64,000 bases of DNA from assembly GCF_021869535.1 (NCBI RefSeq), contig NW_026262686.1, positions 1,860,001-1,924,000 on the forward strand, written 5' to 3'. The translations under genes were made by a program, and so were the position numbers. The DNA comes from Mytilus californianus. Its lineage: Eukaryota. Shown here piece after piece: positions 20,081-52,064 of this stretch. The notes below the pieces were generated by a model that did no database searches, was not told the DNA's origin, and saw only the letters and a program-made list of their open reading frames with translations. Positions within the stretch are counted from its first letter, which is position 1. Every line of letters starts with the position of its first letter.

Positions 20081-20584
20081 AACCAAAGTGCTTGTGAGCA
20101 CTAGAAGGTAAAGATTGCTTTCATTTTACAGTGTGAATTTAAACTATAACATGGCATTGTATTAAGTCAAAACCAACTTCTATTATGGACAAAGGAAGAT
20201 AACTCCAATCTTAATATTACTTTTCATTGCTTTTTTTGTTTTTTTTATCAAGTATGGTTAAGCACATGCACATCATTTTGTAACTTAAATATTTGAGTAG
20301 ACATCATCTATAACTGTTTGCCATGAACATGGTTAGGATCCAAATAATGTTCACTTTTCTGCACTATGTTGTGTGCTCTCAAAGGTAGGAATGAGGTCTG
20401 TGTAAATATCAAGTCAGTGAAATAAGGGTTTTAATTACATTCATGCAATCTTTACCCAAAAACTGTCTACCATAACATGTCAATGTGTGCTGAAACAGGT
20501 GTTTTTAACCAATAATCAATCAATCTTTCAAATGGGTTTGAACAAATTAACATTAAGTGTTATTTAAGTCTGGCTGGTCAGTTT

Positions 20585-21140
20585 TTACACATACCAATTT
20601 ATTTTTCTCTGATTTTATGCATACCAAATTATTTCTCTCAGATTTCTTACAAATCAAATTACTTTTCTCTCTAATTTTTTACATACCAAGTTATTTTATA
20701 CATACCATGTAATTTCTCTCTAATTTTATACATACCAAGTTATTTTATACATACCAAAGTTATTTCTCTCTGATTTTTATACATACCATGTAATTTCTCT
20801 CTGATTTCATACATACCAAGTTATTTCTCTCTGATTTTATACATACTAAGTCATTTCTCTCTGATTGTATACATACCAAGTTATTTCTCTCTCATTTTAT
20901 ACATACCATGTTATTTCTCTCTCATTTTATACATACCAAGTTATTTCTCTCTGATTATATACATACCAAGTTATTTCTCTCTCATTTTATACATACCAAG
21001 TTATTTCTCTCTCATTTTATACATACCAAGTTATTTCTCTCTGATTATATACATACCAAGTTATTTCTCTCTCATTTTATACATACCAAGTTATTTCTCT
21101 CTGATTATATACATACCAAGTTATTTCTCTCTGATTATAT
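20585..21140 (-). repeat. 30-bp tandem array derived from the UPB1 stop-codon region, about 18 copies
   Basis: Minus-strand unit ataatcagagagaaataacttggtatgtat = last codons + TAA + start of the 3'UTR. Confidence 0.92.
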
Positions 21141-21207
21141 CAGGTTTAAAGTCAGGTTTAATAGCCTCATTAATTTCTGCTGCATACATATCCAGTCTTT
21201 GTGTCAT
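21121..21207 (-). CDS. UPB1: UPB1 terminal coding exon 14 ([28 protein letters not shown])
   Basis: tttttaacag|ATGACACAAAGA...GAGAAATAA; stop at 21123-21121. Confidence 0.94.
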   Translation of the reverse strand: MTQRLDMYAAEINEAIKPDFKPDIIREK

Positions 21208-24200
21208 CTGTTAAAAAAATTGTTTTAAAGTAACTTAATTGAAGAAAGGAAACTTTAAAATTTTGAGAATCATACCTCCACATTAAAAGGAACTGAAATG
21301 ACAAGCCTATTTTGTTGTTAAGTTTCAGTATCTGTAAAATCTTAAGTTTTACCTGAATCAATCACTATAAAAGAGGAACGAAAGATACCAGAGGGACAGT
21401 CAAACTCATAGATCCAAAACAAACTGACAACGCCATGGCCAAAAATAAAAAGACAAACAGACAAATAATAGTACAGATGACACAACATAGAAAACTAAAG
21501 ACTAAGCAACACGAAACCCACCAAAAACTGGGGGTGATCTCAGGTGCTCTGGATATAAATGATTGTATCCAAATTGCACCTATTTTGACAGTTTTATCAC
21601 TCACTTTTAATTAGATCCAGACAAAAGTTTCTATTCTGTGTTTATTTTGTAGATGTATCCTTTATAACTGTATAGTTCCACATAAATAAATATGAATCCA
21701 TACTGAATCAGAAAAATGGGTTTGAACCTCCAAACAACCAAAGATTCAGAAATGAGTTGTACCTAGATTGTATCCATGCTTAAATCACATAGATCTGTTG
21801 AAATAAAAACTGGAGGCTCTCAAGAGCCTGTGTCGCTCACCTGACTCTACTTATGTAAAAATAGATAAAAATCATAACAGATACCCAAATAATAATTGAG
21901 GCCAAATTTGGTTTTATATTGGCCCCGTAATTTAATAAAAAATCCTGGTGGCCATCTTGAACAGTAAAGTAGCAACACTTCATCAGCACCTCATAAGGAA
22001 AATTTATGCCATGTTTGGTTTCATTCCATTCAGTGGTTCTCTAAAAGAAGACATTTTTATGTATTTCCTATAGGGTCCTATGTTAAACTAATTCCCCCTG
22101 CTGGCGGCCATCTTGGATGATGGAGCGGCTTCAAAGTAACAACAATTGGTAAGCATCTCATAAGGAACATTCATGCCATGTTTGGTTTCATTCATTTCAG
22201 TGGTTCTTTAAAAGAAGACATTTGTATGTATTTCCCATAGGGTCCTATGTTAAACTAAGTCTGCTGCTGGCGGCCATCTTGGGTGATAAATTGGCTTCAA
22301 AGTAACAACACTTGGTCAGCACTTCATAAGGAACATTCATGCCATGTTTGGTTTCATTCCATTCAGTGGTTCTCTAAAAGAAGAAATTTGTATGTATTTC
22401 CCATAGGGTCCATGTTAAACTAACTCCCCTGCTGGTGGCCATCTTGGATGATGGATCGGCTTCCAAGTAAAAACACTTGGTCAGCACCTCATAAAGAACA
22501 TTCAAGCCATGTTTGGTTTCATTCCATTTAGTGGTTCTCTAAAAGAAGACATTTGTATGTATTTCCCTTAGGGTCCTATGTTAAACTAAGTCCCCGCTGG
22601 CGGCCATCTTGGGTGATGGTATGGCTTCAAAGTAACAACATTTGTCAGCACCTCATAAGGAACATTCATGCCACGTTTGGTTTTATTCCATTCAGTGGTT
22701 CTCTAAAAGAAGACATTTGTATGTATTTCCTATAGGGTCCTATGTTAAACTAATTCCCCGCTGGTGGCCATCTTGGATGATGGATCAATTTCAAAGTAAC
22801 AACACTTGGTCAGCACCTCATAAGGAACATTCATGCCATGTTTGGTTTCATTCCATTCAGTGGTTCTCTAGAAGTTCAAAGTGTAAAAAGTTAACGATGA
22901 CAACGGACGCCAAGTGATGAGAATAGCTCACTTGGCCCTTTGGGCCAGGTGAGCTAAAAACGAAATTTTGTTTTTTTATTTTGCCACATTTTTAGAACAA
23001 TTTGACATTTTTCCATGCTTACTTTTCATTTTGTAAGCTACTTACTCTGAATCCCCACTTATCTTTGATTTGTCTACATAAGTTAAGATCTACTTCAGCT
23101 ACCAGTAATCCATCCTTAGTTCTTGATAAACCCTGAAAGGAAAAAGAGGTCTTTTGTTAAGGAGGACCTTGCAAGGGAACATCATACATTATTTCCCTTC
23201 TACGAGCTCGAGGGAGCATGTTTAATTACTGCCTGCTGCATGGTAACACACTTAATTACTCTATGCTGCCTAGGAACATACTTACTTGCTCACTGTTGCA
23301 TGGGTATATATACTCTTAATAGCCCCCTGTTACATGGAAATGCTTAACTACTCCTTGCTGTAAGAGAGCACACTTAATTCTTTGCTGTCTAAAATAATAT
23401 TTTTTATTCCACAAAAGGAATGTAATCAATTGACATGATTAATGATAAAAGGCCCTAATATTGGTTTCAACACATTTTTTATTGTATCATAATGAGTATT
23501 TATTAGACAAGTTAATTTACTAATTAAGAAAATGATAATCTAATGTATATAATTTAATATAATTAACTATTGAAAAATGATCACACAGTAAAACCAAATT
23601 GAACAACAGTATTCATGGTATTTGATCGACAAAGATGTATTGATTATAAGTCACTGGTGTATTTAAGTGATTATAGTTTATTACTTTATATAACATTATA
23701 TTAAAACACCCAGTCAATGGGTAAATATACATTATTTATGTTATCTATTTTAAAGAAATAAGTTTTATTTAATATCTAGTCAATAATTTTCCAGCATGCC
23801 ATGCAGATGACATGTCATATTTTCCCTCTGGCCATCATATTATTCATGGTACTGTCAAAATACTGACCTTCATCATGTTCATACACAAAGTACAAATTAT
23901 TAAAATTCTTGTTATCAGGTCAATTGTCGTACAGTATTTCCTGTAATTATACCACTACATATATTCTCTCTTTCTGTTCTGAATAAACTTTTGGGTATTT
24001 ACTATACCATACTAGATATACCAAACATACTCAAGATGTTGACTGACCAGTATACCAAATACAAATTGGACTATACTTCAAAACTATATAAATCTAAAAA
24101 ATAACTCAACTAATATATTTTGCATTTGCCATGTTTGCCGTGCGGACGAACTAGCCGGCATTTAATATGATATAATCTGACATTATGTGACGATACATAT

Positions 24201-27200
24201 TTATACAGTACATCAATCGAAAATGATAAATTTGACTAACAGATTTGTCCATCCTAGTCTATATTTTAGAAACAATATAAAAGATTCTATTCCTTGAATC
24301 TTTATCTCCGTCATTAGTGATGAATGCCACCCAGGAAAAACAATAAAAAATAATTTCATGGAAACCTGTAACTCGAGGTAATGCCGACACCACTTCCAGA
24401 GAAAGCGTCAAGTCCAGCGCTTAAAAAACCAAATACAAAAATAAACAGCCACTGTTTATAACATACTTATATATAAATATATACACTTGTAATTTGAGGT
24501 TTACTATCGAACATCCACGGCTAGAATGAAGACCTTAACACAAGACAATACATTTGGCGCCAAACCATAAAAAACTTGACCATTGGTCATTCTAAACACG
24601 TGACTACACTTAGTCTTGATGAACCGTACAATACATTATTTTTCTACTATACTACGAAACGCAGAAAAATGATATTAACCCAACACCCTTCCTTAATTTA
24701 TATATCAAGAGTCTGACAGGATGTTAATCACATACAAATGTTCATCTGTATAAGTTGCATTCTAACCAAGCAAAGCATACTCTGGTTACTATCACGAAAC
24801 ATTGTTCATTATTTTCTATTTTTAGTAGTGGTGACTGACCCGATAATCAATAGGCTTCTTCCCCTCCCCTATATCTTCATCTCTATAAGTTTCATTCTAA
24901 TCAAGCAATGGAAAATGCACCAATCATTGTTAATTTTTTTCTTCTATCTTCAGTAACAGTGACCTTAACCTTGGACATTTTGACCCCCAAATAAAATGGT
25001 TTTTCTCTTCCCTATATTTTTCATGTGTATAAGTTTCATTTAAGTCAAGCATGGGAAACTCAAGTTATCACCCAGAAACAATTGTTCATTTTCTTTTCTA
25101 TTTCTAGTAACAGTGATCGTAACTTTTAACCTTTTTGAACCCAAAATCAAAAGGCTTTTTCCCTCCCAACAGACCGATGGATGGAAGGACAGACAGACAG
25201 ACAGATGGATGGAAGGACAGATAGACAGACGGATGAAATGGAGGATGGGAAGATGGACAACAAGACCAAAACAATTACTATATACTCCTGAAAAATAATT
25301 TTGGGAAGCATATAGAATGTGGGTATAAAATACAAAATAAAGACCCTTAAATTTACCTCTTTACAGTTTATGAGGGTAGGGTAGAGTTTCAAATGAGAGA
25401 GAAAGAGAGAGAGAAAAAAGAAAACAAGACAGTAAACAGTTTAACTGAATAAAAACATTAAACAAAGAAAGCACATTATAAAGAAGTAAGTTTGGTAAGG
25501 GTCAAAGGAGTAGGGGCAATAAGGCCCTTATTTGACCCAAATATTACTGCCAATTTAAAAGTTATCATACATATTCCAAAATTTGTCCTATCTAGACTTA
25601 GGTACAAGGTATTCAGAAAAAAACCACATATTTCACATTTAACGAGTTACCATGACAACAAGCCATGACAAAATTTGTATATTTTGTAAAATTTCTTGAT
25701 TTTCCTTGTTTTTTCATCAAATTTTAAGTGTATTTTAGATTGGCAAGGTATGAGCACATCCAAGAAACAACTTTATATTTGGTGAGATTATGTCAATAGA
25801 TGTAAGTAAGCTTCTCTTAAATTATTTTGTTGTTTCTTGGCTGCGCATGATGTTTCAATAATGGAAATAACGATAGAAAACTGCATAAATTCTGTATTTT
25901 TCATCATTTTCATGAAAACGGTACATATTATGACGTAATTGTGACGTCATCAGATAAAAAATCTTATGTTTTTCATTTATATTTCTTGACTCTATGCTTT
26001 TCTAAACATGTGCCAATTTGAAATAGTTTTCAAACATTTTATTTTCTTGGACCAAAACTGGGCCTTAATGCCCCTTCTCCTTTGGCCTGAATACATGTAT
26101 TAAGTCTTGTTTGAAGATAAAAAATTATTTTAATTGGGAAAAAAGACATGTAAGAAAGAGAAATAGAACTTCTTTTGTGTAGCTTTTCTTATATAGGCTT
26201 AATATTTACAACCCAAATAGATCAAAAGTAGAGATTTTGATGAAAATTGACAAAATCTTCTGAATTTCTATCAATAATAAAGTACATTTAGACCTAGGAA
26301 ACTTAGAGTGCAGGCTTTGACAAACTAAATATATAAATCAGATATGTAAAATGTAATAATCAACAATTTGTTGAAAGATCTTTCTCGTCAACACATGAGC
26401 TCTACGTTTCCAGTAAAAAAAAAAACAATGGAAATTGCCCGTTTTCATTATTTTTTGTGGAAAATCAACATGTGTGCTATTTGTGACGTCATGAAAAGAA
26501 TGTTAATACACAAATTTTCAACAAAAAAGTTCTACCTAGTCAATTTTTATACGACCGCAAAAAAATTTTGCGGTCGTATATTGGTATGACGTTGGCGTCG
26601 TCGTCGGTGGCGTCTTCCGAAGACACATTGGTTTTCGCACTCTAACTTTAGTTTAAGTGAATGGATCTCTGACATTTTACCATAAGGTTCAATACCACAA
26701 ATGGAAGGTTGGGATTGATTTTGGGGGCTTTGGTACCAACAGTTAAGGAAAAAAGGGCCAAAAGGGGCCAAAAATAAGCATTTTTGTTACTTCCAGACAT
26801 AACTTGTGTGTTAGTGGATCTCTCTGACATTGTACCACAAGGTTCCATATCACAAAGGGCCAAAAAACAAGCATTTTTCTAGTTTCAGGACAATAACTTG
26901 TAAGTGTATGGATCTTTCTGAAATTGTACTACAAGGTTCCATATCAACAAGGGAAAGCTGGGATTGATTTTGGGGGTAATTGCCTCAAAATTTTAGGAAT
27001 TAGGGGCCAAAAAGGGGAAAAAAACAAGCATTTTTCTAGTTTCAGGACAATAACTTGTGTGTAAGTGTATGGATCTTTATGAAATTGTACTACAAGGTTC
27101 CATATCACAAAGGGAAAGCTGGGTTTGAGTTTGGGGGTAATTGCCCTAAACGTTTAGGAATTTGGGATCAAAAAGGGGCCTAAAAACAAGCATTTTTCTA

Positions 27201-30200
27201 GTTTCCAGACAATAACTTGTGTTCAAGTGTATGGATCTCTCTGAAATTGTACTGCAAGGTACCATACCACAAAGGGAAGGCTGGGATTGAGTTTGGGGGT
27301 GATGAATCATAAGGGGGTTCAAAAAATTTGGGGGAGGGATTTTTTTTTCCTTTTTTTTTCTTTTAAATTTTCCATTTTAAATTGGTTATTTCTGATTTAT
27401 ATATAAAAGCAAATAATAATGATATGGTTTGAATAGGTAAATTAAAAAATTTTAAGTTCTTAGACCACATTCATTCTGTGTCAGAAACCTATGCTGTGTC
27501 AAATATTTAATCACAATCCAAATTCAGAGCTGTATCAAGCTTGAATGTTGTGTCCATACTTGCCCCAACTGTTCAGGGTTCGACCTCTGCGGTCGTATCA
27601 AGCTGCGCCCAGGGAGCATTTTATTTAACTATGATTCATTGTTTATTGGTCAATAATTACTAATATGAAATTTGAGCTAGAAATAAGGGCCATTTTAGAG
27701 CCTTATCGGACCTACTCCTTATGTCTTATAAACTAATGGTAGTCTTAATTTCAGTTAATGAAGGGTATTCTTACCGGGGTTCTACTGCCATCTGGTGCTG
27801 CCACATAACTCGAACCTGTGAAAGACATCAACAGAATTCAATTAAACATCAACAAAATAAAACATATTTTTGAAAAAATTATCCTTAGAATAAAGCTTCA
27901 AGCTAATAAAAATCATATTCTCATATATATGTGGATAAGTCATTGTAAGTAAACTCAAAAGAAGGTAAAAATAGTATTTTCAGGTTTAAAATGTCACTTT
28001 GGAATTTAGAAGATGATATACCTTACACTGATTCCAAAATAATAAAGTTTGTATTAATTCTATATCATATTATTGTTGACATAACAAATTTATTTATTTT
28101 GTAAAAAATATTTCCATACCCCATGTACTCCTTACAACAAAATTATTATATTTACCTGTGTAAGTTATTTTATTAAACACCATTTTGTCCAAGGTTATAG
28201 TTGTCTTTCTGATATTGTTTTACATCCCCCCCCCCTTTTTTTTTATTAATATTGTATTTACATAGTGTCATAGATCAAATTTATTAGTTCAGTTTATGTT
28301 TATTTGTTTTTGTTAAAATGTCTTTTGATTGAGTTAAGCCATTTCAATTGATATTTTATAGTGTGTCTTTCTATGTTGTGATGTTACATTCAGGTTAGGG
28401 TGTAGGTTGGCGTCTGTTAAAACGTTTTAACCCACTGCATTTGTTTGCACCTGTCCTAAGTCAGGAACCTGTTGTTCAGTGGTTGTTGCTTGTTGATGTG
28501 GTTCATAAGTGTTTCTCGTTTTTTATGTAGATTAGACCGTTGGTTTTCCTGTTTGAATGGTTTTACACTAGTCATTTTTGGGGTCCTTTATAGCTTGCTG
28601 TTCGGTGTGAGTCAAGGCTCCGTGTTGAAGGCTGTACTTTGACCTATAATGGTTTACTTTTTACAAATTGTGACTTGGATGGAGAGTTGTCTCATTGGCA
28701 CTCATACCACATCTTCTTATATCTATATAAAGTTATTTTCAGTGTCAATTCAGTCATTGGACCATGATCTAGTGAGCAGGGCCTGAACATGGTCGACAAA
28801 CTGAGATGTACAGACAGTAATGTAACTTTATAGAAAATATCGTTGTTTATTGTAAGTTGTTCCTATCAATACAACTTAAGCATAAAAACTTAACATTGAA
28901 TATAGCTAATTAATTCAAAGTCACTGGACCATGACCTAGGGGGCAAGGCCTCAAAATTTAAATAGTTGTCAAACTGATATGTACTGATAGTAATGCAACT
29001 TTATACAAAATATTATTGACCTATCACAAGTAGTTCTTATCAAACTGATTTAAGCAGAAAAACTTAACATCGAAAATTGCTAATTTAAATTCAAAGTCAC
29101 TTGACCATGACCTAGGGGGCAAGACCTCAAAATAGTCATCAAACTGATATGAACCAAATATTCTCCATGGAAATGAGATGTCCTTATGCTTACTGCATAC
29201 CAATTATCATTGACCTACTACTAACGGCTTCCCTTAAACTGACCTAATCACAAACTAATATATGTAAACTAAGCAAAGTTTCAAAGTCAATAGACCATGA
29301 CTGAGTGGGCAGGGCCAAATAATCTCCATGGTAATGAGATGTGCCAATGCTAATACAACTGCATACCAAATATCATTAACCTACCACTAGTGGTTCACCA
29401 TAAACAAGACCTAATCACAAACTAATACATTGTTGACGCTGCTGCCGGAAACAGCATACATGTACCTATGTGTCGCTTTTTGACTCAGTCAAGGAGAGAC
29501 AAAAATGGTAAAATTTTTCATTTAAGGGCAATAACTCCTATAAAAAGTCTTTAACAGTTTTGATGTAAATGGACAGTAGGTAGATCTCAACATTCTGAAC
29601 ATTTTTGCCTTGTCCTTGTCAAAATTTCTCTATTCAAGAAGTTTTCAATATAATAGAAAAAACTTTAATACATTTTTCCCTCTGTTCTATTTTTACCCAT
29701 GTTGGTTGGCAGGTGGCGTCATTGGACACATATTTTTGTAACTTGATACATGTACTCCATGATAATTGTGGTCAAGTTTAGTTTAATTTGACCAACTTAT
29801 TTAATAAAAGATTTTTAGGTAAAGTTAAAGGTTGAGGGCAATGACAGATGCCAAGTGATGGCCTAGCAAGCTAAAATAAGAGACCGGGACTCATTGTGAC
29901 CTCTTCTGGCTGATACATCTTTTATCATCAATCATGCTTTATGACTATAAACTGATTACAACTTAATGAAATAAAAGTTGATCGCTATTTTATCAATATG
30001 ACCTGCAGATATTTAGACAACTTACTGTAACTGTATTAGAATAATCAAGATATTTTTACTATACCAAGATATTTATTCATCCAATATATATAGTATGTCA
30101 AGAGATTACTTTTTTCCCATTTAAAATACTATGGATAAAAGTTCCCAAGAAATGACGGATAAAATTTCCTAATGACAAAATGTATTGTAAAAATAAGAGA

Positions 30201-33200
30201 ATCAGATAAACTTACCATAGAAATGGCCAAAATCCTTGTGAGCTGAAAAAGAAATCTCTGTTTAATGTTTCCAACATGTCTAACAGATAATATTGTGAAA
30301 ATCATGTGGTATAGACTGCAATGTTGACAACTGTGGCACATTCTAAAGCATGCAAAGATTGTTAACTTCATCAGAAGTCTTCCATAGCTCAGAACACTAC
30401 CAAGTCTATAAGTAAATTCTTTTCAGATGTTGAGCAACTCAAGATTGTCAAGCAAGCATGTACATGTAAATAAATAATGACCCCACCACTCTTGATTGAA
30501 AAATTTATCATTTTTTAGAAAAAATTGTCCAAATTTGTTTTATATATTCAGTTAAGGTCTGCTTCAGCTTTATGGAATTTTGCCCCCCCACCCCTTTCAA
30601 AAATCCTGGATCTGCCTCATTACCCCCTTGTATCACAAAGCTTTATTTCACTTAACACCTGCAGGTTAGGTGGTTTCACTTGGAACAAGTTTTTATGTCA
30701 CTGCCATATTAGAAACTTTAAAATCACAGCTGTGACCAACTGAGATCTTCAGCTCATATCTAAAAGTAAAGCTATTTTGTCACAAGGTCCACATTACTTG
30801 CCAAGGCCATGGATAGGATCTAAAGAATGTTTAACTCAATGCATTATGCTAGGTAAGTTTGAGATGAGGCCATGAATATAACTAAATATAGATGTCAAGC
30901 CAGTGACTATAGGGTTATGAATGAATTTAGTGCCAATTACACATTATGGTAAAAAAAAAGATTTAACTCACCTTTTCTTCCATCTGCTGAGGTAAATTCA
31001 TTGGGAAATTCTTCCTGAAATAAAACATCTCATATTTATTGTAAGTTTCGGTATTATTAATTCCTTTTTTCCTTACTTAATATATTGACAAACTTCAATT
31101 GATCATAAAGTTTAACATAATAACATCTCAGTGAACTAGTATACATTAGTTTAGGGGTTATCTCAAGCCCGTCTCTGGGTGTGGGATTTTCTCGCTGTGT
31201 TGAAGACCCATTGGTTGCCTTAGGCTATTTTCTGTTCTTTGGTCGATTAGTTGCTCTTTGACACATTCCCCTTTTCCATAATCTATTCTAGTCAATGGGT
31301 CATGTGACAGTTGAACACAAAAATGGCAAGAAAATAAAGCATGTAGCTCCCACAAAGTCTATACAGAGAACCCTGCAATACCTGGCAGCATTATTTGTCT
31401 AAATGAAACAACACAGTTCCAATGTCTCCCACTGCAGCAAATATTTCATTTGTTCAAAGGGATTATGACTCCAATAATTTTCCATTTCAAGTGCAGTGAT
31501 CATTTAGATTTCAAAGACAATGGTTATATAATCCATTGATATATATATGATTTTATCTAAAACTCAACAAGAAATGAAGGCTTGAGATTGCTTACAATTT
31601 TCCATATACATGATATAAAATGTAAAAAAATTATAATAAAAAAAGAAAATGTATATTTATAAACCAAGTAATTGCATTTTAAAAATTGTTAACCATGTGT
31701 TAACATTGGTGTTTCTATTTTAAGTCTAACACAAGCATGCATGTGTTGTCATACTTTGCTTACTCCCACTCATTATTCTAAGTTTCTGAAAATAGACCAA
31801 TCCAAAAAAGGGCTTATACATTACAACTGGTCATTGTTAAGCTGCTGATCAAATACAAGTTGGTCCATTCCATAGTTACTGAGAAAATGACATGCAAATA
31901 CCGATATATGATTTCATTTAACACACTGAACAATTTAAAGTATCAGCAAACAGGAAGTAGATATCTGACAGACAAAAAGACAGCAACTCATCAATATCAA
32001 GCTGCTGACCGAATATGATTTCATTGTCTTTTAGTGCTGAATCCTGAGTAAAGTGTTACTAACGGTAATATATTTATTGAACAAAACAACAAAAAAGGTT
32101 GGATAGTAACAGACAAGGTGATAACAATATATATCCAAGTGGGGGAAGAATATCAAATGCTTAAATTGTCAAATCAGGTAAAAACTTACTGTTCCCACTC
32201 TGTTAATAGCCACTGTAAAATAATGATTTGCAATGGCAGCATTTCTAGCCTCTATTGGCCACATAGGTTCACTGAAAATATAAACAGTGGCAAGAGTTAG
32301 CAATAGTGTCATTTCTAGCTTCTATTGGCCACATAGGTTCACTGAAAATATAAACAGTGGCAAGAGTTAGCAATAGTGTCATTTCTAGCTTCTATTGGAC
32401 ACATATAGGTTCACTGAAAATATAAACAGTGGCAAGAGTTAGCAATAGTGTCATTTCTAGCTTCTATTGGACACATATAGGTTCACTGAAAATATAAACA
32501 GTGGCAAGAGTTAGCAATAGTGTCATTTCTAGCTTCTATTGGACACATATAGATAGGTTCACTGAAAATATAAACAGTGGCAAGAGTTAGCAATAGTGTC
32601 ATTTCTAGCTTCTATTGGACACATATAGGTTCATTGAAAATATAAACAGTGGCAAGAGTTAGCAATAGTGTCATTTCTAGCTTCTATTGGACACATATAG
32701 GTTCATTGAAAATATAAACAGTGGCAAGAGTTAGCAATAGTGTCATTTCTAGCTTCTATTGGACACATATAGGTTCATTGAAAATATAAACAGTGGCAAG
32801 AGTTAGCAATAGTGTCATTTCTAGCTTCTATTGGACACATATAGGTTCATTGAAAATATAAACAGTGGCAAGAGTTAGCAATAGTGTCATTTCTAGCCTC
32901 TATTGGCCACATAGGTTCACTGAAAATATAAACAGTGGCAAGAGTTAGCAATAGTGTCATTTCTAGTTTCTATTGGACACATATAGGTTCATTGAAAATA
33001 TTAACAGTGGCAATAGTTAGCAATAGTGTCATTTCTAGCTTCTATTGGCCACATAGGTTCACTGAAAATATAAACAGTGGCAAGAGTTAGCAATAGTGTC
33101 ATTTCTAGCTTCTATTGGACACATATAGGTTCACTGAAAATATAAACAGTGGCAAGAGTTAGCAATAGTGTCATTTCTAGCCTCTATGGGCCACATAGGT

Positions 33201-39200: not shown

Positions 39201-42200
39201 TTCTCCTATGTCATGTATGTATAACAAAGTTAGACTTGTTCTGTAAAATATTGATGGCCCTGAAAAGGACTTCTTATGAGAGATATCCTCTGCACTAGAT
39301 GAATTCCAAGCCTTGTTCATTGTTGTTTGATCTTGTTTTCTCGTCACTTTATTGACTTTTAACCTGGCCTTTGCCCTTTTGTTTACATACACTGTGACAT
39401 CATTTTGATGGGAGATAACTTTTGTACAAATAAAGAAGCTCAAAAGGTAATGTGAATAATAGTCTTATTCAATGCATGGTGTAAATTTTTAGAGTTATTC
39501 ATCCTTCCTTGCATTTTAATGAAAATTAACTGAATTATTCCCTCTCACTTGATAATGTGTTATTGTTTAACATATATGTAAGGTATAATAATGATAATAA
39601 CTGCAGTATTTAGAGTCAAACACTATTCTTGCAGTATCAAGAGTACGTTTAACTTACCGAACTGTGTATCAAATACTTTATGTCCAGTATTGCCCTCCAT
39701 ATAATAGGTTGACTGAAAAATAAATAATCAATACAAGTATTTATATACATAATAAATAAATGAATAAAATAAATGTCAGCTTTAGCCCTCACCTAGTAAT
39801 TTTATTTATCTTATTAGGGGATCTAAATCATAAATGAAGGTCAAGGTCATCCATTTGGTATTGACCTCCTTCGTTTCTAAAAATGATGCATCAAGTGCTA
39901 GCAAACTCCAAACAATTGGGTAAGGGTATAATTGATTAGTAGATAAATACTTAATTTATCTCAAAATATAAATTGAATTATTGTTAATTCAGTTAGTCAA
40001 GTTAAAGTACATTTCCTGTTTTATAATGATACTTGCTTGTGCTAACTTATAATGTTTAACAATTTCTTGTGTTATAATGTTTAATAATTTCTTGTGCTAA
40101 CTTATTATGTTCAATAATTTCTTGTGCTAACTTATAATGTTTAACAATTTCTTGTGCTAACTTATGTTTAATAATTTCTTGTGCTAACTTATAATGTTTA
40201 TTATTAGTCGTCCCACTATCTATATCACTCTGCTCAGCTCTTAATAAAACAACATATCACAGCTTTGTGATGTCATATACATTGACCTGGCATTAACAAC
40301 TTTGACCTGGACATATCAACAACGTCATAATGTATAAACCGACGTTAATAAGTTTGACCCGAACTTATCAAGACATCTCCCGGGTTGCTGGTGAAACAAA
40401 GAAAACACTTATTTCTTTCATGCAAAATACGCAAATACAACCTAATTAATCGATTATCTGGTCATCTGCATATTGGTATTGTAAAATATAAGCTGCTCGA
40501 CACAATATGAAGCCTTTTTGAACTCGTTCGCTGCCCTCACTCGACAAAAAGCTTCATATTGTGACTCGCAGCTGATATTTTCAGTATCAATATGCAGACA
40601 ACCTGATAATCGGTACATAATTTCATGTGCTAACTTATAATATTTAATAATTTCATGGGCTAACTTATAATGTTTAATAATTTCTTTGGCTAACTTATAA
40701 TGTTTAAGCACAACAAAGTCTTGTGCTAACTTATCATGTTCAATCACAATAAAATCTTGTGCTAACTTATCATGTTTAATCACAATAAAATCTTGTGCTA
40801 ACTTATCATGTTTAATCACAATAAAATCTTGTGCTAACTTATCATGTTTAATCACAATAAAATCTTGTGCTAACTTATCATGTTTAATCACAATAAAATC
40901 TTGTGGTAATGTTTAATCATAATAAATTCTATTGCTGACTTATTTAATATGTTTAATCATAATAAATTCTATTGGTAACTTATTATGTTTAATCATGATA
41001 AACCCTTGTACTAACTGATTATGTTTACTTCTTATTAAAGTTTAATTGGATTGTTTTCTGACCTCATTAAAGTCTCCTACTCTTGGTATATGATTTTTCC
41101 TAGACTTCCCTAAGTACTGCCCTGTGTTAGAGATCACCACTGAAATGGAAAAACAAGTACTTTATGTATACATATTGTAAAATGCTCACCATCTAAGAGG
41201 ATAGAATTCTCAAGAGAGGGGAGATAATTACCTTTTTGTTCTACCTCCATGATTAGCATTTCAGAATAAATAACTTCAAAGACAGGGGAGATAATTACCT
41301 GTTAGTTCTATGATTACCATCTCAGAGGAAACTAGACATCATTGAGATGGGAGCTATGTCTGTGGGCCCCGCTGACCTTGAACTTTGACCTAGGAAGTTG
41401 TACAAACATTATGACACATCCTCTGGTGTTGGTTAATATACATGTCAAGTATAAAGTATAAAATCATAACGGTTCTCTAGATATAGAGCGGACACAATTT
41501 GTTACGGACTGACGGACGGACAGACTGATCACTATAGGGCGACCCGCCTAGGTGGGGCCATAATAACTTTCAAGACAGGAGAGATAATTACCTTTTCATT
41601 CTACAACCATGATCACCATCTAAGAGGAAATAACTTTCAAGACATTGCTGACAAGGGAGATAATTACTTGTTTGTTCTACCACCATGATCACCATCTTAG
41701 AGGAAACAACTTTCAAGACAGGGGAGATAATTACATGTTAGTTTTACCACCATGATCACAATCTCAGAGGAAATATCTTTCAAGACAAGGGAGATAATTA
41801 TCTGTTAGTTTTACCACCATGATCACTATCTAAGAGGATAGAACTTTCAAGACAGGGGAGATAATCATATGTTAGTTTTACCACCATGATCACAATCTCA
41901 GAGGAAATAACTTTCAAGACAAGGGAGATAATTGTCTGTTAGTTTTATCACCATGATCACTATCTAAGAGGATAGAACTCTCAAGACAGGGGAGACAATT
42001 ACCTGTTCGTTCTACTACCATATGATAAGCATCTCAGAGGAAATAACTTTCAAGACAGGGGAGATAATTACCTGTTAGTTCTACAACCATGATCAGCATC
42101 TAAGAGGATAGAACTCTCAAAACAGGGGAGATAATTACCTGTTCGTTCTACCGCCATGTTTAGCATCTCAGAGGAAATAACTTTCCAGACAGGGGAGATA

Positions 42201-45200
42201 ATTATCTGGTTATTTCTACAACCAAGATCAGCATCTTAGAGGATAGAACTCTCAAAACAGGGGAGATAATTACCTGGTTGTTCTACCACCATGATAAGCA
42301 TCTCAGAGGAAATAACTTATTTGATTTGAACTATCATTGAGTTTGTCAACCAGCCTCTGAATTAAACAACACTTTTTTTTTCTAAGGACTAAGGTGGTAT
42401 AAAAATTTTCTTGAAAGTGATAATTAGTGCACCTGATCCAGATTTTTATCATTCTGACATACTGGCAGAGGAGTACAACTCAAAAGTTCCTAACTAGCTT
42501 TGCACTTGTTTTCAATCTCTCTATTAATCAGGAGATGAAAACGTGATCACAGGAAAAATTTTGATTGGCTAATGATCACTGATTATGATTGTTTCCTTTG
42601 AGAAAAGTTTAAAATGGGGAACAAAACAAAAAATTTGAGTGAAGATTTTCACAAATCAGGTTTTAGGGCTATTTTCACAATCAGGATTTTGTAATCAGGA
42701 CAAGAGGTTTATATATATATCGTGTAGTGCATGCCATAGTCCTATAAGTTGGCAGGTATGAAGATGAAAAGGAAGAAGAGAAAGACAACAATTTTCTATA
42801 AAAAAAATGTGACAAGCCAAAGATGTGTATTACCTGCTGTGTTAGCTAAAATGTCTCCATGATCAGCATCACACTCCAGTATAGGGGACACTATAACCAT
42901 GTTGTATTTACCTGCTGTGTTAGCTAGAATATCTCCATGATCAGCATCAGGCTCCAGTATAGGGGACACTATAACCATGTTGTATTTACCTGCTGTGTTA
43001 GCTAAAATGTCTCCATGATCAGCATCACGCTCCAGTATAGGGGAAACTATAACCATGTTGTATTACCTGCTGTGTTAGCTAGAATATCTCCATGATCAGC
43101 ATCACGCTCCAGTATAGGGGACTCTATAACCATGTTGTATTACCTGCTGTGTTAGCTAGAATATCTCCATGATCAGCATCACGCTCCAGTATAGGGGACA
43201 CTATAACCATGTTGTATTACCTGCTGTGTTAGCTAGAATATCTCCATGATCATCATCACGCTCCAGTATAGGGGACACTATAACCATGATAACCATGTTG
43301 TATTTACCTGCTGTGTTAGCTAGAATATCTCCATGATCAGCATCACGCTCCAGTATAGGGGACATTATAACCATGTTGTATTTACCTGCTGGGTTAGCTA
43401 GAATATCTCCATGATCAGCATCACGCTCCAGTATAGGGGACACTATAACCATGTTCTATTTACCTGCTGTGTTAGCTAGAATGTCTCCATGATCAGCATC
43501 ACGCTCCAGTATAGGGGACACTATAACCATGTTGTATTTACCTGCTGTGTTAGCTAGAATATCTCCATGATCAGCATCACGCTCCAGTATAGGGGACACT
43601 ATAACCATGTTGTATTACCTGCTGTGTTAGCTAGAATATCTCCATGATCAGCATCAGGCTCCAGTATAGGGGACACTATAACCATGTTGTATTTACCTGC
43701 TGTGTTAGCTAGAATATCTCCATGATCAGCATCACGCTCCAGTATAGGGGACACTATAACCATGTTGTATTTACCTGCTGTGTTATCTAGAATATCTCCA
43801 TGATCAGCATCACGCTTCAGTATAGGGGACATTATAACCATGTTGTATTACCTGCTGTGTTAGCTAGAATATCTCCATGATCAGCATCACGCTCCAGTAT
43901 AGGGGACACTATAACCATGTTGTATTTACCTGCTGTGTTAGCTAGAATATCTCCATGATCAGCATCACGCTCCAGTATAGGGGACACTATAACCATGTTG
44001 TATTTACCTGCTGTGTTAGCTAGAATATCTCCATGATCAGCATCACGCTCCAGTATAGGGGACACTATAACCATGTTGTATTTACCTGCTGTGTTATCTA
44101 GAATATCTCCATGATCAGCATCACGCTTCAGTATAGGGGACATTATAACCATGTTGTATTACCTGCTGTGTTAGCTAGAATATCTCCATGATCAGCATCA
44201 CGCTCCAGTATAGGGGACACTATAACCATGTTGTATTTACCTGCTGTATTAGCTAGAATATCTCCATGATCAGCATCACGCTCCAGTATAGGGGACACTA
44301 TAACCATATTGTATTTCTTTGCCAGCTGAAAAAAGTTTTAATAATATATATTGACTATTTACATGTATGGTTTTGAAAACAAAAGGAAGATTCTTAACTA
44401 AAATCTCATCAAAGGGCAAGAAACTTCCTCAAGTTGAAAGACAATAGAAGTCTGTTTATCGATCTGGTTTTTTTAAGGCAACTTCAATGATGTTGGTTAA
44501 CATTTGTTCTCACATAACTTGACTAAGAAAAAACTTTCTCAGTTCGGTTGCTTGAGTTATTATCATGCAAAAAAATCAAAGCAAAATTTAAGAAATAAAC
44601 ATTAATAAATTTATACCTAGAAATTATTTATAAAAGATCAAACTAGAGAATAAAAAACATACAATATTACATAGGATGGCCTGTCATGGTTGACAATTTA
44701 AGAAGTATTAGACATGTTGGTTGTTGCTTTACTTCCCTAGACACTTATTTACATTTTGTAGGTCATCAGATCTTAAAATGAACTCAGGCATAAAATTCCT
44801 CATCAGTAACAAAGATGAAAGCTTAATCAAAGCCACTCAGCTGTAAAATAAGTGATAAGTACCGTCCATCTAATGGCACAAGGTCAGAATATCTTCCAAA
44901 GATGCATTTGCACACTAAATTAAATAGCTGTTGGTCTTCAACCTGGTTTTGGAGGCAGCCACAATAGCAGAAGTAAATACTCCGAAAATCCCCGTAATTT
45001 TGGTTGAGACAAAGAATAAACTGTTGACACAGAGATGTGTCTCGCCTGTTGTCAAAAATTTGAAAAAATGTGAATCTGATGGACAGCAACATTGCTTATT
45101 AATTCAAAGTCGCTGGACCATGACCTAGAGTCAGGGCCTCAAAATTGTTGTCAAATTGATATAAACTGATAGTAATGCAACTTTACAGAAAGTATCATTA

Positions 45201-48200
45201 CCTATCACAAGTAGTTCCTATCAAACTGACTTAAGCAGAAAACTTAACAATTGTTGATGCCACTGCCGCTGGCAAAGCAACACCTATGCCTCGCATTTCG
45301 TGAATTTCGTCGCTGACGATACAAAAACTCTAATGATTACTGAAAATTTAGGATTTATCTGCTATTCAGATTTTTTAGTTTATATCATGTTTATGAAGAA
45401 AGTAGATAATTTATACCTCCTGTCACATTTTATGTGGAAGGGGGAGATAATTCACACATCTTGTAACATTTTATTTGGAAGGGGGGAGATAATTCACACC
45501 TCTTGTAACATTTTATGTGGAAGGGGAGACAATTCATACCTATTGTGACATCTTTTTTGGGAAAGGAATGTTGAAGGGGGAGATAATTCATACCTATGGT
45601 GATATCTTTTTGGGGAAGGGAGATAATTCACACCTCTTGTAACATTTTTGTGTGGAAGAGGAAGATAATTCATACCTATGGTGATATCTTTTTGGGGAAG
45701 GGAGATAATTCATACCTCTTGTAACAATTTTGTTGTAGCTCCATCTTCTGCTGATTCAGCAAATTCACACCATGGGTGTTTCTCACGTGTACAGAAGGCA
45801 AATGGCATTGCTGTAAAATAAATGTGTGATTTTAATTTCCCAACAGCTTACTTTTGGTAAAAACTTGTCATAAATCAAAAAATTTCTGACACTTATCTTT
45901 TGGCAATAAAATATTCAAGTAGTTATATATATTCAAGCCATGGTAAGAAAACATTCAAAAATATATATGCCAATAATACTTTTTCACTTCAACTCTTATT
46001 GAGCAATTTCGCAAGGTTCTTGTACAATGTATTATCATTTTTGTATTTTGATATAAGTTGGATTATATTTTGCATTTTGTAATTAATAGTAATACATAAA
46101 AGTTGATTACCCTGCTCATGTAAAGAAAAACTCCATAGAAAAGTTTAACACTGTCTCTTGCCAAATTCAACATACATTTAAAAACATGGTGAATATTGGT
46201 AGCACCTAAGACAAAGTATTGTCCTCTGTTTCACTACAAAAGCACAAAACAAGTTTTTTTCTATTTCTAGACATGCTGAATAGTTAATTTTGCTCAACAT
46301 TTTATTGTTCAAATTAGCATTCCCAGGATAGGGTATGACATCATAATACTAACAAAACTGAAAATAACGGGACATTTCTTAACCTTTTACTTGACACAGT
46401 TATCTACCCTGATTTTTTCAACTTACTCCATGCTTCTTGTAAACAAATGACATTGACACCACATAAACTGGCCATCTCTATAATCTCTGATATTCTGTTG
46501 TGTAGAGATTCAACCTGAAACAGAAACCAGGACAATAGAAACACAACTTATAAACTTGCCATTTCTCTTCATATGTATCTAATATATACTGTTATGTTAA
46601 GATTCATATACTGTTATGTTAAGATTCAATCTCTTACAGAAATCAGATAGCATCAAAAACATAAAAAGGTAATAGGCAAACTTACACCACATACATAGTG
46701 CTCAGTGTTAACACCACATACATAGCGCTCAGTGTTAACACCACATACATAGTGCTCAGTGCTAACACCACATACATAGTGCTCAGTGCTAACACCACAT
46801 ATATAGTGTTCAGTGCTAACACCACATATATAGTGTTCAGTGCTAACACCACATATATAGTGCTCAGTGTTAACACCACATATATAGTGCTCAGTGCTAA
46901 CACCACATATACAGTGCTCAGTGTTAACACCACATACATAGTGCTCAGTGTTAACACCACATACATAGTGCTCAGTGCTAACACCACATATACAGTGCTC
47001 AGTGTTAACACCACATACATAGTGCTCAGTGCTAACACCACATATATAGTGCTCAGTCCTAACACCACATATATAGTGCTCAGTGCTAACACCACATATA
47101 TAGTGCTCAGTGCTAACACCACATATATAGTGCTCAGTGTTAACACCACATATATAGTGCTCAGTGCTAACACCACATATATAGTGCTCAGTGTTAATAC
47201 CACATATATAGTGCTCAGTGTTAACACCACATATATAGTGCTCAGTGCTAACACCACATATATAGTGCTCAGTACTAACACCACATATATAGTGTTCAGT
47301 GTTAACACCACATATATAATGCTCAGTCCTAACACCACATATATAGTGCTCAGTGTTAATACCACATATATAGTGCTCTGTGCTAACACCACATATATAG
47401 TGCTCTGTGCTAACACCACATATATAGTGCTCAGTGCTAACACCACATATATAGTGCTCAGTGATAACACCACATATATAGTGCTCAGTGTTAACACCAC
47501 ATATATAGTGCTCCGTGCTAACACCACATATATAGTGCTCCGTGCTAACACCACATAGATAGTGCTCCGTGCTTACACCACATATATAGTGCTCAGTGCT
47601 AACACCACATATATAGTGCTCAGTGCTAACACCATTCACACTTTATTTTCTGCTGTTTGCAAAAGCTCGCAATTTGATACCCTTGCTCCCTATACACACT
47701 TGAAAAGAATAATCTAATATGCAACTGCAAAGTCCATGTTTGGTACATAGAAATAATGAGTAAAAAGTAAAATAGGAATTGCCAATAAATGCCATATGTC
47801 ATGTCGAAATATTACCTGTTTTGATACAGACTTTGTGGTAGGCAGTTCATGGTTTAAATCTTACGTGTTTTGATACAGGCTCTGTAGTAGGCATTTTATG
47901 GATCTAACCTTCAGTCAGGGGTGCTACTTGTACAAGTAATTTTTATTTACTTGAAGAAGTAAGTATTAATATACTTATATAAGTAAATTTGTAGGATACT
48001 TATACAAGTGTATTTTATTTAATTTACTTGTATAGGTAAAAAAAAATGGGCTTAGTTATGTCCCTTAGACATTCAGATTTTTTTACTTATACAAGTAAAA
48101 AAGTCAGCCTATCTTCTTTTCTTGAATTCTTAGGACTTCTTTGCTCTAATAGAATTTTTGATTGTCTGTCCTTTGCAGATGTCTTTACTAATCATTTAAG

Positions 48201-51200
48201 TGTAATTTCATGGACAATGAAAATCTTATTTGTCTTTTATCTTCAGAACACTGCTCATTTACAAGCCCCCAAGGGGCAATTTTTGAAGGCCTTGTGCAAT
48301 TACTTAAGATCTTTGCTCAATCAGTTTCTTTGTTGAATTAATGAGATGAAACATTGAACTCTAATCAAACATTATGAGCTAACCTGAGAAAAATTGTTAA
48401 AGTCATGTTTATACATCTCAAAACTTGAGAATTTTTGTAGGATTGTAAAAAAAAATTACTTATACAAGTAAATTTTTGAGAAAATTAAGGGGAGATTATT
48501 CAAACATAATTAACTTCTATAAGTAGATTTTATTTACTTCTTCAAGTAAATAAAGATTACTTGTACAAGTAGTACCCCTGACTGACCCTACCTGTTTTGA
48601 TACAGACTCTGTAGTAGGCAGTTCATGGATCTAACCTTACCTGTTTTGATACAGACTCTGTAGTAGGCAGTTCATGGATCTAACCTTACCTGTTTTGATA
48701 CAGACTCTGTAGTAGGCAGTTCATGGATCTAACCTTACCTGTTTTGATATAGACTCTGTAGAAGGCAGTTCATGGATCTAACCTACACTGTTTTGATACA
48801 GATTTTGTAGTAGGCAGTTCGTGGATCTAACCTTACCTGTTTTGGTACAGGCTCTGTAGTAGGCACAATAATCTGATTTTGTATAGCACCAATTCTGACT
48901 ACTCTTGGTGGACGGAGAGATTCTTTTTCTGCAGTAAAACAACTGCCTTTTACTTCAAACTGTCTTTTATCTGCCAAATCTCTGGCCTCCTTTGGAAACT
49001 CTAGTTGTCTGTGTAAAACATTAACAAAATTAATTTGGTTTTGACCCTATAACATGTATAAGGGTTTTCAACATGTTCAAGATAGACAGTCAGGGGACTT
49101 ATTGAAATAAGTGATTTTAAATCACTTATTTCAGTAGCAAATTCAAAGTTTTGTCACAAACACATGCAAATTGTGATTTTGTAGTTTTACCAAAATTTTA
49201 AACACATAGGTTTAGATAATATCATTTCATTAGTAAAATTGAAAAAAATAAACTTTTTGCTTCTTTTAAGCAGCAAGGTTTATGCCTTTGATGCAATCAT
49301 TAAGCTGCAAATTCTATTTTAGTTAAAGAAATGCTATAAAAATGGCTTTACATAATGAACAATGAACTGATACTTTCTTAACAGATTTTTCCCAGCATTG
49401 TGAGTATTTTTCCTGTAAAATTCAAGGTTTCATCTTATAGATTATGTAATAAAATTCTACTGTTCGCCATCAAAATTTCACTGTTCGGGGGTGTTGAAAT
49501 TAGTCAGTCAAGGGTGTAACTTGAATAAGTTATTAGAGAAAAATAACATACATGTGTTATTACGGGTACTTTCTCTTAATCTGTAGTAACATATGTTTGT
49601 TATCAGTTAAATGTACCATAAAATTTTTTATTTTCAGTGGGTACTTGGGAATTCTTGAAACTTGCGCAGTAACTTAAAACATAACCTTGAAAACTTATTT
49701 TCAAATTCAATTAATACATTTTTGATCAACCATGGTAAATCAATGAGACAAGGCTTTTAAGTCAATAAGTGATAACTTCCTTAGCTGTAATAACAAGGCT
49801 TAGTTATTACAGGCATTTAACTTATTACATGAGACACTTGGGAATGACTAGGAAGCTTGCTCAGAACCTCATTACATGCTCTTATCATTATTTATTACAA
49901 TAAATAAATACATTAATATTGTGATATATATAGGAGAAAAGGCTTTGAAGAGATGTAGAGAAGCTGTAATAACACCCTTTAGTTATTACAGGCATATTTT
50001 TTCTGTAATAACATGGGTGTGTCATGCATGATTGGCATACTATGGGCTGTTATATCTTTCTATCGTTTAGTATACATAAAGCATTGCAAAGACAATAATA
50101 ATATCAATAGAACTAGTACACAATTTAACAAAATAAAGGATGTATAATGCCCCTTTGAAACATGTAACATACATATGTTATCACAGATTTTTGATTTTTC
50201 AGCCCTCAATAACAAATGTATGTTATTTTTCTCTAATAACTTATTTAAGTTAGACCCTTAACTGTTAGTGGGGGTTATTAAAATAATGATACTTAAAGAA
50301 GTGATTTTTTGGAAGGAAATTGAGGTATGATACTTAAACAAGTGATTTTTATGTCATTATCCTAGATTTAGTACAAGGTCATCACCTGACATGACCTGGT
50401 CATTCCTATCAACACAGATATTGGTTCTGATAATTTTAGCAACATAATTAGTCCCTGGATCATCAGTATTCTATATTTAAAGCTACAATAAAATTAAATC
50501 ACTTAGTCTAGTGATTAATTTGTACTACTTAAATAGGTGATTATCAAAGAAAGACAACTCTTACTTCCAACCTTTATGGACATAATGTTACTTGAATCAG
50601 TGATTTAGAAAATCACTCATTTAAGTAATTCCCCTGACTGATAGAAGGCAAAACTTGCATTTCACCCCTATGTTCTAATTTAGCAATGTTACCAATGTTA
50701 TTTGCAGATGCTGATCCAGCATTTTGAAAAAGGGGGGCCCAGGTGCCCCCAAAGTAGCCAACTTTTGTAGTGGAAAAGGTAAAATGTCTGAATTATCCAT
50801 TAATGTAGCTCCATAAGGGGGCGCCTAGGCACTCTGGCCTCTTCCTCTATAAATCCATCTCTTTTAAAATTAAATACATCATAGATGAATTTAGCCAAAT
50901 TAGGGTAAGTTTGCAAAACAGTTTTAGAGAAGATTTTTCTAAACTTTAACAGGCAACAACTGATGTCAAACACCAAATGATTGGAAATGTTTATAGGACC
51001 TCTGGGCCAATTGTTCCAACAGTGCAGGATTTAATTTGAAAATTTAAATACTGTTCACCTTTTAGAGTATACTAGTTAGCTTATGTTAAGACGAGATCTC
51101 TGCAACAGCACAACCTCGTGAAGAGCCGATTGACTTCTTTTGGACCATCGGATTGTCAGACTATTTGTCCTTCTGACTAATAAGGGACTGTCAAACTATC

Positions 51201-51811: not shown

Positions 51812-52064
51812 GGTTTTGAATTCACACGTTGACAGAGAAGATGAATGAACCAAAGAGGTTCCGAGAAGCTGCGATATGTTTACATTTTACAAAAGGGGTG
51901 TTTATTATTTATCTACGCTCAAATCACCAGTAATTGCAAATAAAAACGCATTTATTAAAAAAAAAAAAGATAAATCAACAATGAAACAATTGAAATCAAA
52001 CGAGAGAGATATATTTAAAAAAAATTATTAACTAAATTTTGTCTGAAGAGAAATATTTTCATAC

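Follow-up and report, generated by a model that had tools for sequence, protein, structure and literature searches.

Minisatellite arrays built from splice junctions of UPB1 in Mytilus californianus: probable mirages in a mollusc

Why do so many of the tandem arrays in a single mussel gene start at the edge of an exon and consist of copies of that very edge? The question is raised by a 64-kb stretch of DNA from Mytilus californianus (NCBI RefSeq assembly GCF_021869535.1, contig NW_026262686.1, positions 1,860,001 to 1,924,000; referred to below as the window), which is AT-rich (GC content 30–41%), dense in tandem repeats (69 rows in the output of Tandem Repeats Finder, TRF) and carries the gene UPB1 on its minus strand. 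An initial annotation of this DNA had placed seven arrays at UPB1 exon boundaries and had taken them for copies of the adjacent exon edges. We located the arrays by TRF and read their composition by aligning each real junction copy by copy against its own array; all seven lie at the places reported and are built as proposed. The pattern, for which the initial annotation knew of no named description, does have a name: minisatellites at intron-exon boundaries were termed "mirages" in amphioxus (PMC3087553, PMC3902484). We consider it probable that the UPB1 arrays are minisatellites of the mirage type, born by slippage, grown by unequal exchange, largely neutral, and tolerated through a positional choice of the splice site.

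Composition of the arrays and structure of the gene

In each of the seven arrays, the repeat unit comprises the edge of the adjacent exon together with its splice site. Five arrays stem from donor junctions (exons 2, 4, 5, 8, and 14) and two from acceptor junctions (exons 8 and 9); all are arranged head-to-tail and are of minisatellite size (TRF periods of 30–78 bp, 4–35 copies, 80–95% matches). Units within an array diverge by 5–18% and form structured variants and higher-order repeats, the latter with periods of 311 bp (exon 5), 142 bp (exon 9) and, in M. coruscus, 60 bp (exon 14). The real exon copy sits at the array edge in all seven cases. This geometry, and with it the survival of the reading frame, had been stressed in the initial annotation; the intact copy is indeed present at each array edge, but any viable duplication of a junction must have this arrangement, which is no extra observation.

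When every TRF consensus was scored against all 14 exon sequences, with shuffles as the control, six junction arrays gave z scores of 4.3 to 56, and the match was always to the adjacent exon on the coding strand; all remaining arrays in the 64-kb window stayed below a z of 2.5. The seven junction units are mutually unrelated and each consensus matches only its own adjacent exon, in agreement with the earlier view that they do not represent one mobile element. Bivalve genomes carry satellites borne by transposable elements (Helitrons and miniature inverted-repeat transposable elements, MITEs), and such satellites might have captured exon fragments and delivered them as cargo; the 162–169-bp arrays of introns 12 and 13 may be borne by such elements. 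We nevertheless give this explanation hardly any credence for the junction arrays, as each of the seven unrelated units has its match in the neighbouring exon only, with which it is contiguous and shares the strand, and as the unduplicated orthologous sites described below are plain junctions with flanking microhomology and no element ends.

All of the junction arrays lie on the minus strand, as does the gene. The exon 2 donor array (48585–48865; x5.7, z 11) has a 49-bp unit made of 33 nt of exon 2 (48837–49008) and 16 nt of intron; alignment resolved six copies and one remnant, all with GT, of which the first unit is the real exon end. A detached remnant of the same unit (x1.9, z 10.8) is located deeper in intron 2 (47807–47901). 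At exon 4 (45716–45810), the donor unit of about 40–42 bp combines about 20 nt of exon with 20 nt of intron (45404–45733; z 4.3), and GT is kept in every copy aligned (5–8 copies). The exon 5 donor array (42826–44316; 77/78 bp, x19, z 56) spans 76 of the 85 nt of exon 5 (44241–44325) and is organised as a four-unit higher-order repeat; the real exon is followed by 18 extra units in which 76 nt of exon are joined to GT (AAATACAAC), and CAG|GTAA stands at the end of every one. Exon 8 (36703–36817) is flanked by arrays on both sides. Its donor array (35232–36744; x21–22.5, z 21) has a 67-bp unit of 40 nt of exon and 27 nt of intron, and the 21 aligned copies, the real one included, comprise 14 with GT and seven with TT, so that 13 of the 20 extra copies (decoys) retain GT; with growing distance from the exon, the copies drop from 100% to 85–90% identity with the real one. 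Its acceptor array (36810–36951; 33 bp, x4.4), with 23 nt of intron and only about 10 nt of exon in the unit, is the weakest case, recognised only through its TRF coordinates and the alignment, which resolved three to four copies, all with AG. The exon 9 acceptor array (32240–34756; x35, z 12.5) repeats a unit of 70–74 bp (27 nt of intron and 45 nt of exon 9, 32190–32271); 18 of its 35 copies carry AG and 17 carry AA, which leaves AG in 17 and AA in 17 of the 34 decoys.

The array at exon 14 (20583–21140; 30 bp, x18–19, z 8.8) had been described as a copy of the stop region running into the untranslated region (UTR). Its unit consists of 18 nt of exon, including the stop codon, and 12 nt of intron, and is a repeat of the donor CTTG|GTATGT of an intron within the 3'UTR, as seen from the splice sites in the window and from an M. 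coruscus RNA-seq contig (L006; Logan SRR13891810). GT is present in all copies. It thus counts as the fifth donor-junction array and lies in a 3'UTR intron; its decoys cannot change the protein.

The gene itself was identified with the exon 8 peptide as the query, which retrieved beta-ureidopropionase proteins, and then by a full-length match to Mytilus UPB1 proteins, against which a tblastn and spliced-alignment model was refined. The model has 14 coding exons, all flanked by GT-AG introns, with a coding sequence of 1155 nt (384 amino acids plus stop) and an ATG-to-stop span of 30,691 bp; the values of 1155 nt and about 30,700 bp given in the initial annotation are thereby confirmed. In addition to the exons already located, these are exon 1 (coding part 51711–51811, ATG at 51811), exon 3 (46427–46514), exon 6 (41063–41139), exon 7 (39658–39712), exon 10 (30972–31014), exon 11 (30216–30242), exon 12 (27775–27815), exon 13 (23046–23132) and exon 14 (21117–21207), whose stop codon occupies 21121–21123 and which ends 4 nt later at the donor. 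Exon by exon, the protein is 93–100% identical to its counterparts in M. coruscus, M. edulis and M. trossulus; the Mytilus genes compared share the 14 coding exons with the same phases, and no new intron was seen among them.

The M. coruscus contig contains an uninterrupted open reading frame (ORF) of 1155 nt and matches the M. coruscus UPB1 exons at 97–100% identity overall and at 100% for most of them. In it, exon 14 ends 4 nt past the stop codon, and splicing joins it to a 3'UTR exon that lies about 1.5–1.8 kb downstream. The corresponding exon 15 of the window (19414–19593, minus strand; acceptor tttttcag|ATAGAGG) matches nt 1622–1792 of the contig at 90.6%, and the conserved splice sites suggest a 3'UTR intron at 19594–21116 (minus strand) that would start 4 nt after the stop codon. 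This intron lies too near the stop codon for nonsense-mediated decay (NMD) to be expected. With the 3'UTR exon included, the UPB1 transcription unit extends over 19414–51926 (minus strand; protein alignment and M. coruscus contig, 5' end approximate), and arrays of all kinds account for 32.5% of its 32.5 kb.

Enrichment at junctions and comparison across Mytilus

Seven of the 13 array families in UPB1 are derived from junctions, or seven of 14 if a 174-bp two-copy repeat at 28797–29133, found in a first TRF run and absent from a second, is counted. Under a conservative null, in which a seed has to overlap an exon by at least 8 nt, 1.26 junction families are expected (P = 7e-5); if only seeds straddling a junction are considered, the expectation is 0.91 (P = 4e-6). 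Junctions therefore bear arrays at about five to eight times the chance expectation, and the enrichment at exon boundaries proposed in the initial annotation is borne out. Mytilus DNA could be so rich in minisatellites throughout that arrays came to lie beside exons by accident, and at least eight further arrays in the window, outside UPB1, have no exon content; moreover, the choice of this window, out of about 794 annotated ones, was made post hoc. Yet such a coincidence appears very improbable to us in view of the P values, of the nine junctions of UPB1 hit across the genus with lineage-specific gains, and of two more junction arrays in a gene that had not been selected.

This gene is ZSWIM7, the neighbour of UPB1, which we inspected in M. 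edulis (L008) as a control. At 8563–11381 of that locus, a donor array repeats a 70-bp unit of 50 nt of exon and 20 nt of intron 40 times, and a second donor array at 12172–16015 has units of 70/76 bp (x2.3 plus x48). In both of them the first unit is the real exon end (8612 and 12226). The occurrence of such arrays in two unrelated genes points to junction arrays as a candidate genome-wide property of Mytilus.

Orthologous UPB1 loci were compared in M. coruscus (L003), M. edulis (L004, and L009 as a second assembly) and M. trossulus (L005). The same junction units, of the same length and phase, recur in five independent assemblies of four species, and it is their copy numbers that vary. The 49-bp exon 2 donor unit is present 5.7 times in the window, 40 times in M. 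coruscus, about twice (L004) or 17 times (L009) in M. edulis and 15 times in M. trossulus. For the 40/41-bp exon 4 donor unit, the figures are about x8 in the window, x11 and x8 in M. coruscus, and x24 (L004) or x8.5 (L009) in M. edulis, with none adjoining the exon in M. trossulus. The 78-bp exon 5 donor array (x19 in the window, x10.7 in M. coruscus) is absent from M. edulis and M. trossulus. At exon 8, the 32/33-bp acceptor unit is found in 4.4 copies both in the window and in M. coruscus and in 2.1 copies both in M. edulis (L004) and in M. trossulus, and the 67-bp donor unit in 22.5 copies in the window, 13.5 in M. coruscus, 2.3 (L004) or about 22 (L009) in M. edulis and 29 in M. trossulus. 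The 72-bp exon 9 acceptor unit occurs 35 times in the window, 3.3 times in M. coruscus and about 1.6 times in M. edulis and in M. trossulus, where this short state has the derived variant seen in the large arrays. The 30/60-bp exon 14 donor array (x18 in the window, x12 in M. coruscus) was not detected in M. edulis. Two junctions that are plain in the window bear arrays elsewhere, namely the exon 3 acceptor (84 bp, x6–7, in M. edulis; 180 bp, x2.4, in M. trossulus) and the exon 6 donor (89 bp, x3, in M. coruscus; two copies in M. trossulus). Across the genus, nine UPB1 junctions (six donor, three acceptor) thus carry arrays.

Between the window and M. coruscus, the decoy consensus agrees at 78 of 78 positions for exon 5 and at 67 of 67 for the exon 8 donor. 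In both species, all exon 5 decoys read AAC where the real exon has AAT. Variants common to the decoys are thus missing from the real copy, which takes no part in the homogenisation of the array. Several arrays are older than the divergence between the M. coruscus/window lineage and the M. edulis/M. trossulus lineage, and the lineage-specific gains at the exon 3 acceptor and the exon 6 donor show that the process is ongoing. No junction arrays were found in UPB1 of the outgroup Dreissena. In two long-read metagenome contigs from ENA, L001 (ERZ25070786) and L002 (ERZ25073805), there are UPB1-like animal genes whose introns are very short: exons 5, 7, and 8 lie within 834 bp in the former, and exon 8 of the latter is not followed by a donor array.

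The same comparison, of a kind that the initial annotation had proposed, bears on the possibility of an assembly artefact, named there as one of two outcomes that would refute its reading, with reads mis-stacked or collapsed at exon edges. Tandem arrays are hard to assemble, sequence near exon 2 is out of order in the M. coruscus draft, and collapse could explain part of the copy-number gap between the two M. edulis assemblies. Against this stand the 5–18% divergence among units with its structured variants and higher-order repeats, the recurrence of the junction units at orthologous positions in four species and five independent assemblies, and the fact that the gene predictor applied to M. 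coruscus read in-frame through extra exon 5 units. As an account of why the arrays exist, an artefact is scarcely credible and is effectively excluded; the exact copy numbers are provisional. The public M. coruscus UPB1 model in question (P0207) has 444 amino acids, runs through three extra exon 5 units and lacks 22 exon 2 residues, unlike the RNA contig, which encodes the normal 384 amino acids. A second M. edulis model (P0280, 372 amino acids) is garbled near junctions that carry arrays.

Splicing at the arrays and their probable origin

How does a gene function with dozens of additional splice sites? The M. coruscus contig is spliced only at the exon-contiguous sites, at every junction that bears an array. 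Use of the contiguous site is hence shown at the RNA level in M. coruscus, and we infer the same for the species of the window. By the geometry of an array, its functional site has to be the 5'-most donor or the 3'-most acceptor, and tolerance would follow if this copy, which adjoins the exon body, were the only one to be spliced. Use of 63 of the 64 intact coding-region decoys (GT or AG) would lead to a premature stop, so that mis-spliced RNA would mostly be degraded by NMD; the remaining one, the first exon 5 decoy, would add 26 amino acids in frame. Each unit contains a single splice site only, unlike whole-exon repeats. A tandem exon duplication or a cluster of mutually exclusive exons was accordingly ruled out, given one splice site per unit and 63 of 64 decoys giving a premature stop.

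Acceptor arrays should be harder to tolerate than donor arrays because their decoys are transcribed before the real site. The numbers are small, but the excess of donor over acceptor junctions (six vs. three in UPB1, two vs. none in ZSWIM7) and the loss of AG from half of the exon 9 decoys fit this expectation. Selection against decoy sites may underlie such losses, but the changes from AG to AA (17 of 34 decoys at exon 9) and from GT to TT (seven of 20 at exon 8) are each one of only six to eight high-frequency variant positions per unit, and three other arrays keep all of their sites.

The retention of sites raises the alternative that the arrays were selected as regulators, with decoys that tune UPB1 output through unproductive splicing and NMD, or that serve as U1/U2AF platforms in long AT-rich introns. 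The age of several arrays, which are older than the split of the two Mytilus lineages, would suit such a role, as would the consensus GT kept by 18 of 18 exon 5 decoys and 18 of 18 exon 14 decoys and the sheer share of the gene that the arrays fill (32.5%). However, copy numbers range from 0–2 to 20–40 between species and between the two M. edulis assemblies, next to a protein that is 93–100% identical; the exon 5 array is wholly absent from M. edulis and M. trossulus; the splice dinucleotide is gone in half of the exon 9 decoys and in a third of the exon 8 donor decoys; similar arrays occur in the unrelated neighbour ZSWIM7; and Dreissena UPB1 has none. Because copy numbers are not conserved and a whole array can be missing from sister species, we regard a regulatory role as unlikely. 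The junction arrays look like largely neutral or mildly costly by-products and not like required parts of the gene.

The mirage-type reading that we prefer would start from a small tandem duplication, produced by slippage, or by repair through microhomology, between short direct repeats whose spacing equals one unit. Such repeats are visible at two unduplicated sites. In M. trossulus, whose exon 5 is not duplicated, the heptamer AATACAA is present once within the exon and once in the intron (+3 to +9), at a distance of 77 nt, which equals the unit length of the array in the other species. The unduplicated exon 3 of the window has a direct repeat with 12 of 13 nt matching at a spacing of 87 nt, and M. 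edulis carries an 84-bp array there. Birth by microhomology is shown for the first of these sites, suggested for the second and presumed for the remaining ones. Growth and shrinkage of an established array would then proceed by unequal exchange or replication slippage, as indicated by the higher-order repeats, the homogenised decoys and the copy numbers that differ between species and assemblies. The identity gradient along the exon 8 donor array would fit turnover from the exon side, though this is a single case.

Several points weigh against this reading. The microhomology route is demonstrated at only one site. Neutral slippage alone predicts no junction bias, which calls for a missing factor, be it a mutational hotspot, a polarity of expansion from the exon side, or selection. 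The intact donors in 18 of 18 exon 5 decoys in two species could be read as constraint. RNA support consists of one assembled contig from another species, which reflects the dominant isoform only and is silent on the level of decoy use. The enrichment null uses present-day collapsed intron lengths; shorter ancestral introns would shrink the enrichment, and we estimate P at about 0.007 for an assumed per-array expectation of 20%. The post hoc choice of the window, mentioned above, belongs here as well.

Mytilus and, convergently, amphioxus may possess a DNA-level process that preferentially duplicates and expands splice-junction sequence. We hold this to be possible though rather doubtful. Candidate processes may include breakage or repair linked to splicing during transcription or to pausing of the polymerase, or an exon-anchored initiation of recombination with polar growth; R-loops, damage coupled to splicing and eccDNA, named in the initial annotation, may be further candidate causes of the junction bias. 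If it were true, intron expansion, the turnover of splice sites and possibly the gain of introns in these marine broadcast spawners, which are very polymorphic, would have a major and continuing driver in mirages, and mirages would also impose a measurable load of unproductive splicing.

Related systems and further features of the locus

Among described systems, the mirages of amphioxus are the closest. They occur in the globin genes BflGb6 and BflGb9 (Ebner et al., PMC3087553), in TnC and PGBD5 (PMC3902484) and, as summarised in a later article, as several somatically unstable arrays with units of 10–72 bp in Adh3 (Canestro, Gonzalez-Duarte and Albalat 2002, cited in PMC3087553). As in amphioxus, the UPB1 unit spans the exon-intron boundary with its AG or GT signal, arrays occur at both 5' and 3' exon boundaries, and units evolve in concert while the boundary copy is excluded from homogenisation. 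Several arrays share one gene, as they do in Adh3 according to that summary. Amphioxus mirages vary in length between haplotypes, and UPB1 copy number differs between species and between M. edulis assemblies; mirages leave splicing normal, and exon-contiguous splicing is seen here in the M. coruscus contig. The differences lie in the phylum (Mollusca), in the copy numbers (up to 35 in UPB1 and about 50 in ZSWIM7 vs. three to six in the amphioxus globins) and in the persistence of orthologous arrays across four Mytilus species, with lineage-specific gains and with nine junctions of one gene affected. For amphioxus, the mechanism is stated to be unknown and the junction bias is likewise unexplained (PMC3087553, PMC3902484).

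A comparable donor array is found in intron 7 of the human F7 gene, where the first of the 37-bp units of a variable number of tandem repeats (VNTR) spans the boundary of exon 7 and IVS7, and where the choice of the most upstream of several identical donors was demonstrated experimentally (PMC1557585). The UPB1 donor arrays resemble it as runs of near-identical 5' splice sites of which the exon-contiguous one is used, judged by the M. coruscus contig. F7, in contrast, has a single array in a genome in which such arrays are rare, whereas UPB1 has many, acceptor arrays among them, and RNA evidence that is indirect. In Rogers' model of intron gain (discussed in PMC3087553), an internal tandem duplication that spans an AGGT proto-splice site also provides a gene with extra donor/acceptor pairs, and it has been proposed that new or shifted introns could be made from junction arrays; UPB1 differs from the model in having no new intron. 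A further parallel concerns hypervariability: the UPB1 arrays have hypervariable copy numbers, higher-order variants and, at the exon 8 donor, a gradient of identity from the exon end. Classical hypervariable minisatellites (VNTRs) show polar turnover beside a flanking recombination hotspot. The UPB1 units are unlike these in being AT-rich, gene-derived and anchored on splice junctions.

Literature searches for junction arrays in molluscs returned no report, although coverage of the literature was incomplete and one may exist. New here are the second phylum, the higher copy numbers, the orthologous persistence with recurrent gains, the quantified enrichment, the microhomology at an empty site and the occurrence in an unselected gene. 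That mirages are common in a second, unrelated phylum, as our data suggest, turns the cause of the junction bias into a tractable comparative question. With the natural series of up to 35–50 near-identical donors or acceptors, it can be tested in an animal far from mammals how the 5'-most donor and the 3'-most acceptor are chosen and what part NMD plays. On a practical level, junction arrays corrupt gene models, as with the M. coruscus protein of 444 instead of 384 amino acids; and, making up a third of the length of UPB1, arrays contribute to intron and genome size in mussels and offer hypervariable intragenic markers.

Not all arrays of UPB1 have a junction origin. The exon-content comparison found none for the 27-bp array of intron 2 (46684–47634; x35), for the 162-bp array of intron 12 (26759–27300) or for the 165-bp array of intron 13 (21966–22874; x5.5), which has an ortholog in M. 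coruscus (158 of 166 score). The latter two may be satellites that stem from transposable elements; in M. edulis, a 161-bp array that lies downstream of UPB1 is related to the 162-bp unit of intron 12. An exon 6 donor origin was ruled out for the 30/36-bp arrays of intron 6 (40029–41027), which start 36 nt past exon 6 and contain no exon sequence. The 67/134/270-bp array of intron 5 (41565–42318; z 0.6) weakly resembles the exon 5 donor unit, which is suggestive of an old, decayed exon 5 junction array (p about 0.013 before correction for 14 tests). The arrays of the window that lie outside UPB1 (at least eight) showed neither exon content nor an adjoining exon. Among them are minisatellites downstream of the gene that appear intergenic, with units of 38 bp (x102; 1375–5334), 45 bp (x10; 6495–6969), 56 bp (x29; 7652–9262) and 33 bp (x7; 9408–9647), and that illustrate the high general minisatellite load of this genome.

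In the window, ZSWIM7 lies head-to-head with UPB1, with exons at 51876–51930 and 60735–60807 (plus strand) and with the two ATGs about 65 bp apart. The 24-residue peptide of its exon 2 is identical to that of M. californianus ZSWIM7 and differs from those of M. edulis, M. galloprovincialis and M. coruscus, which, together with the arrays shared with M. coruscus, makes M. californianus the probable source of the window on sequence grounds as well. In M. edulis, UPB1 likewise has ZSWIM7 as its upstream neighbour, and in Dreissena a SWIM-domain gene. Intron 1 of ZSWIM7 (about 8.8 kb) contains a long interspersed nuclear element (LINE) and two large arrays (45 bp, x20; 47 bp, x31), of which the 47-bp array stops 33 nt before exon 2 and does not include the exon. 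The element, a retrotransposon without long terminal repeats (52709–56002, minus strand), has an intact ORF of 1097 amino acids with an endonuclease domain (Exo_endo_phos_2), RVT_1 and a weak zf-RVT match, and it may be a recently active LINE.

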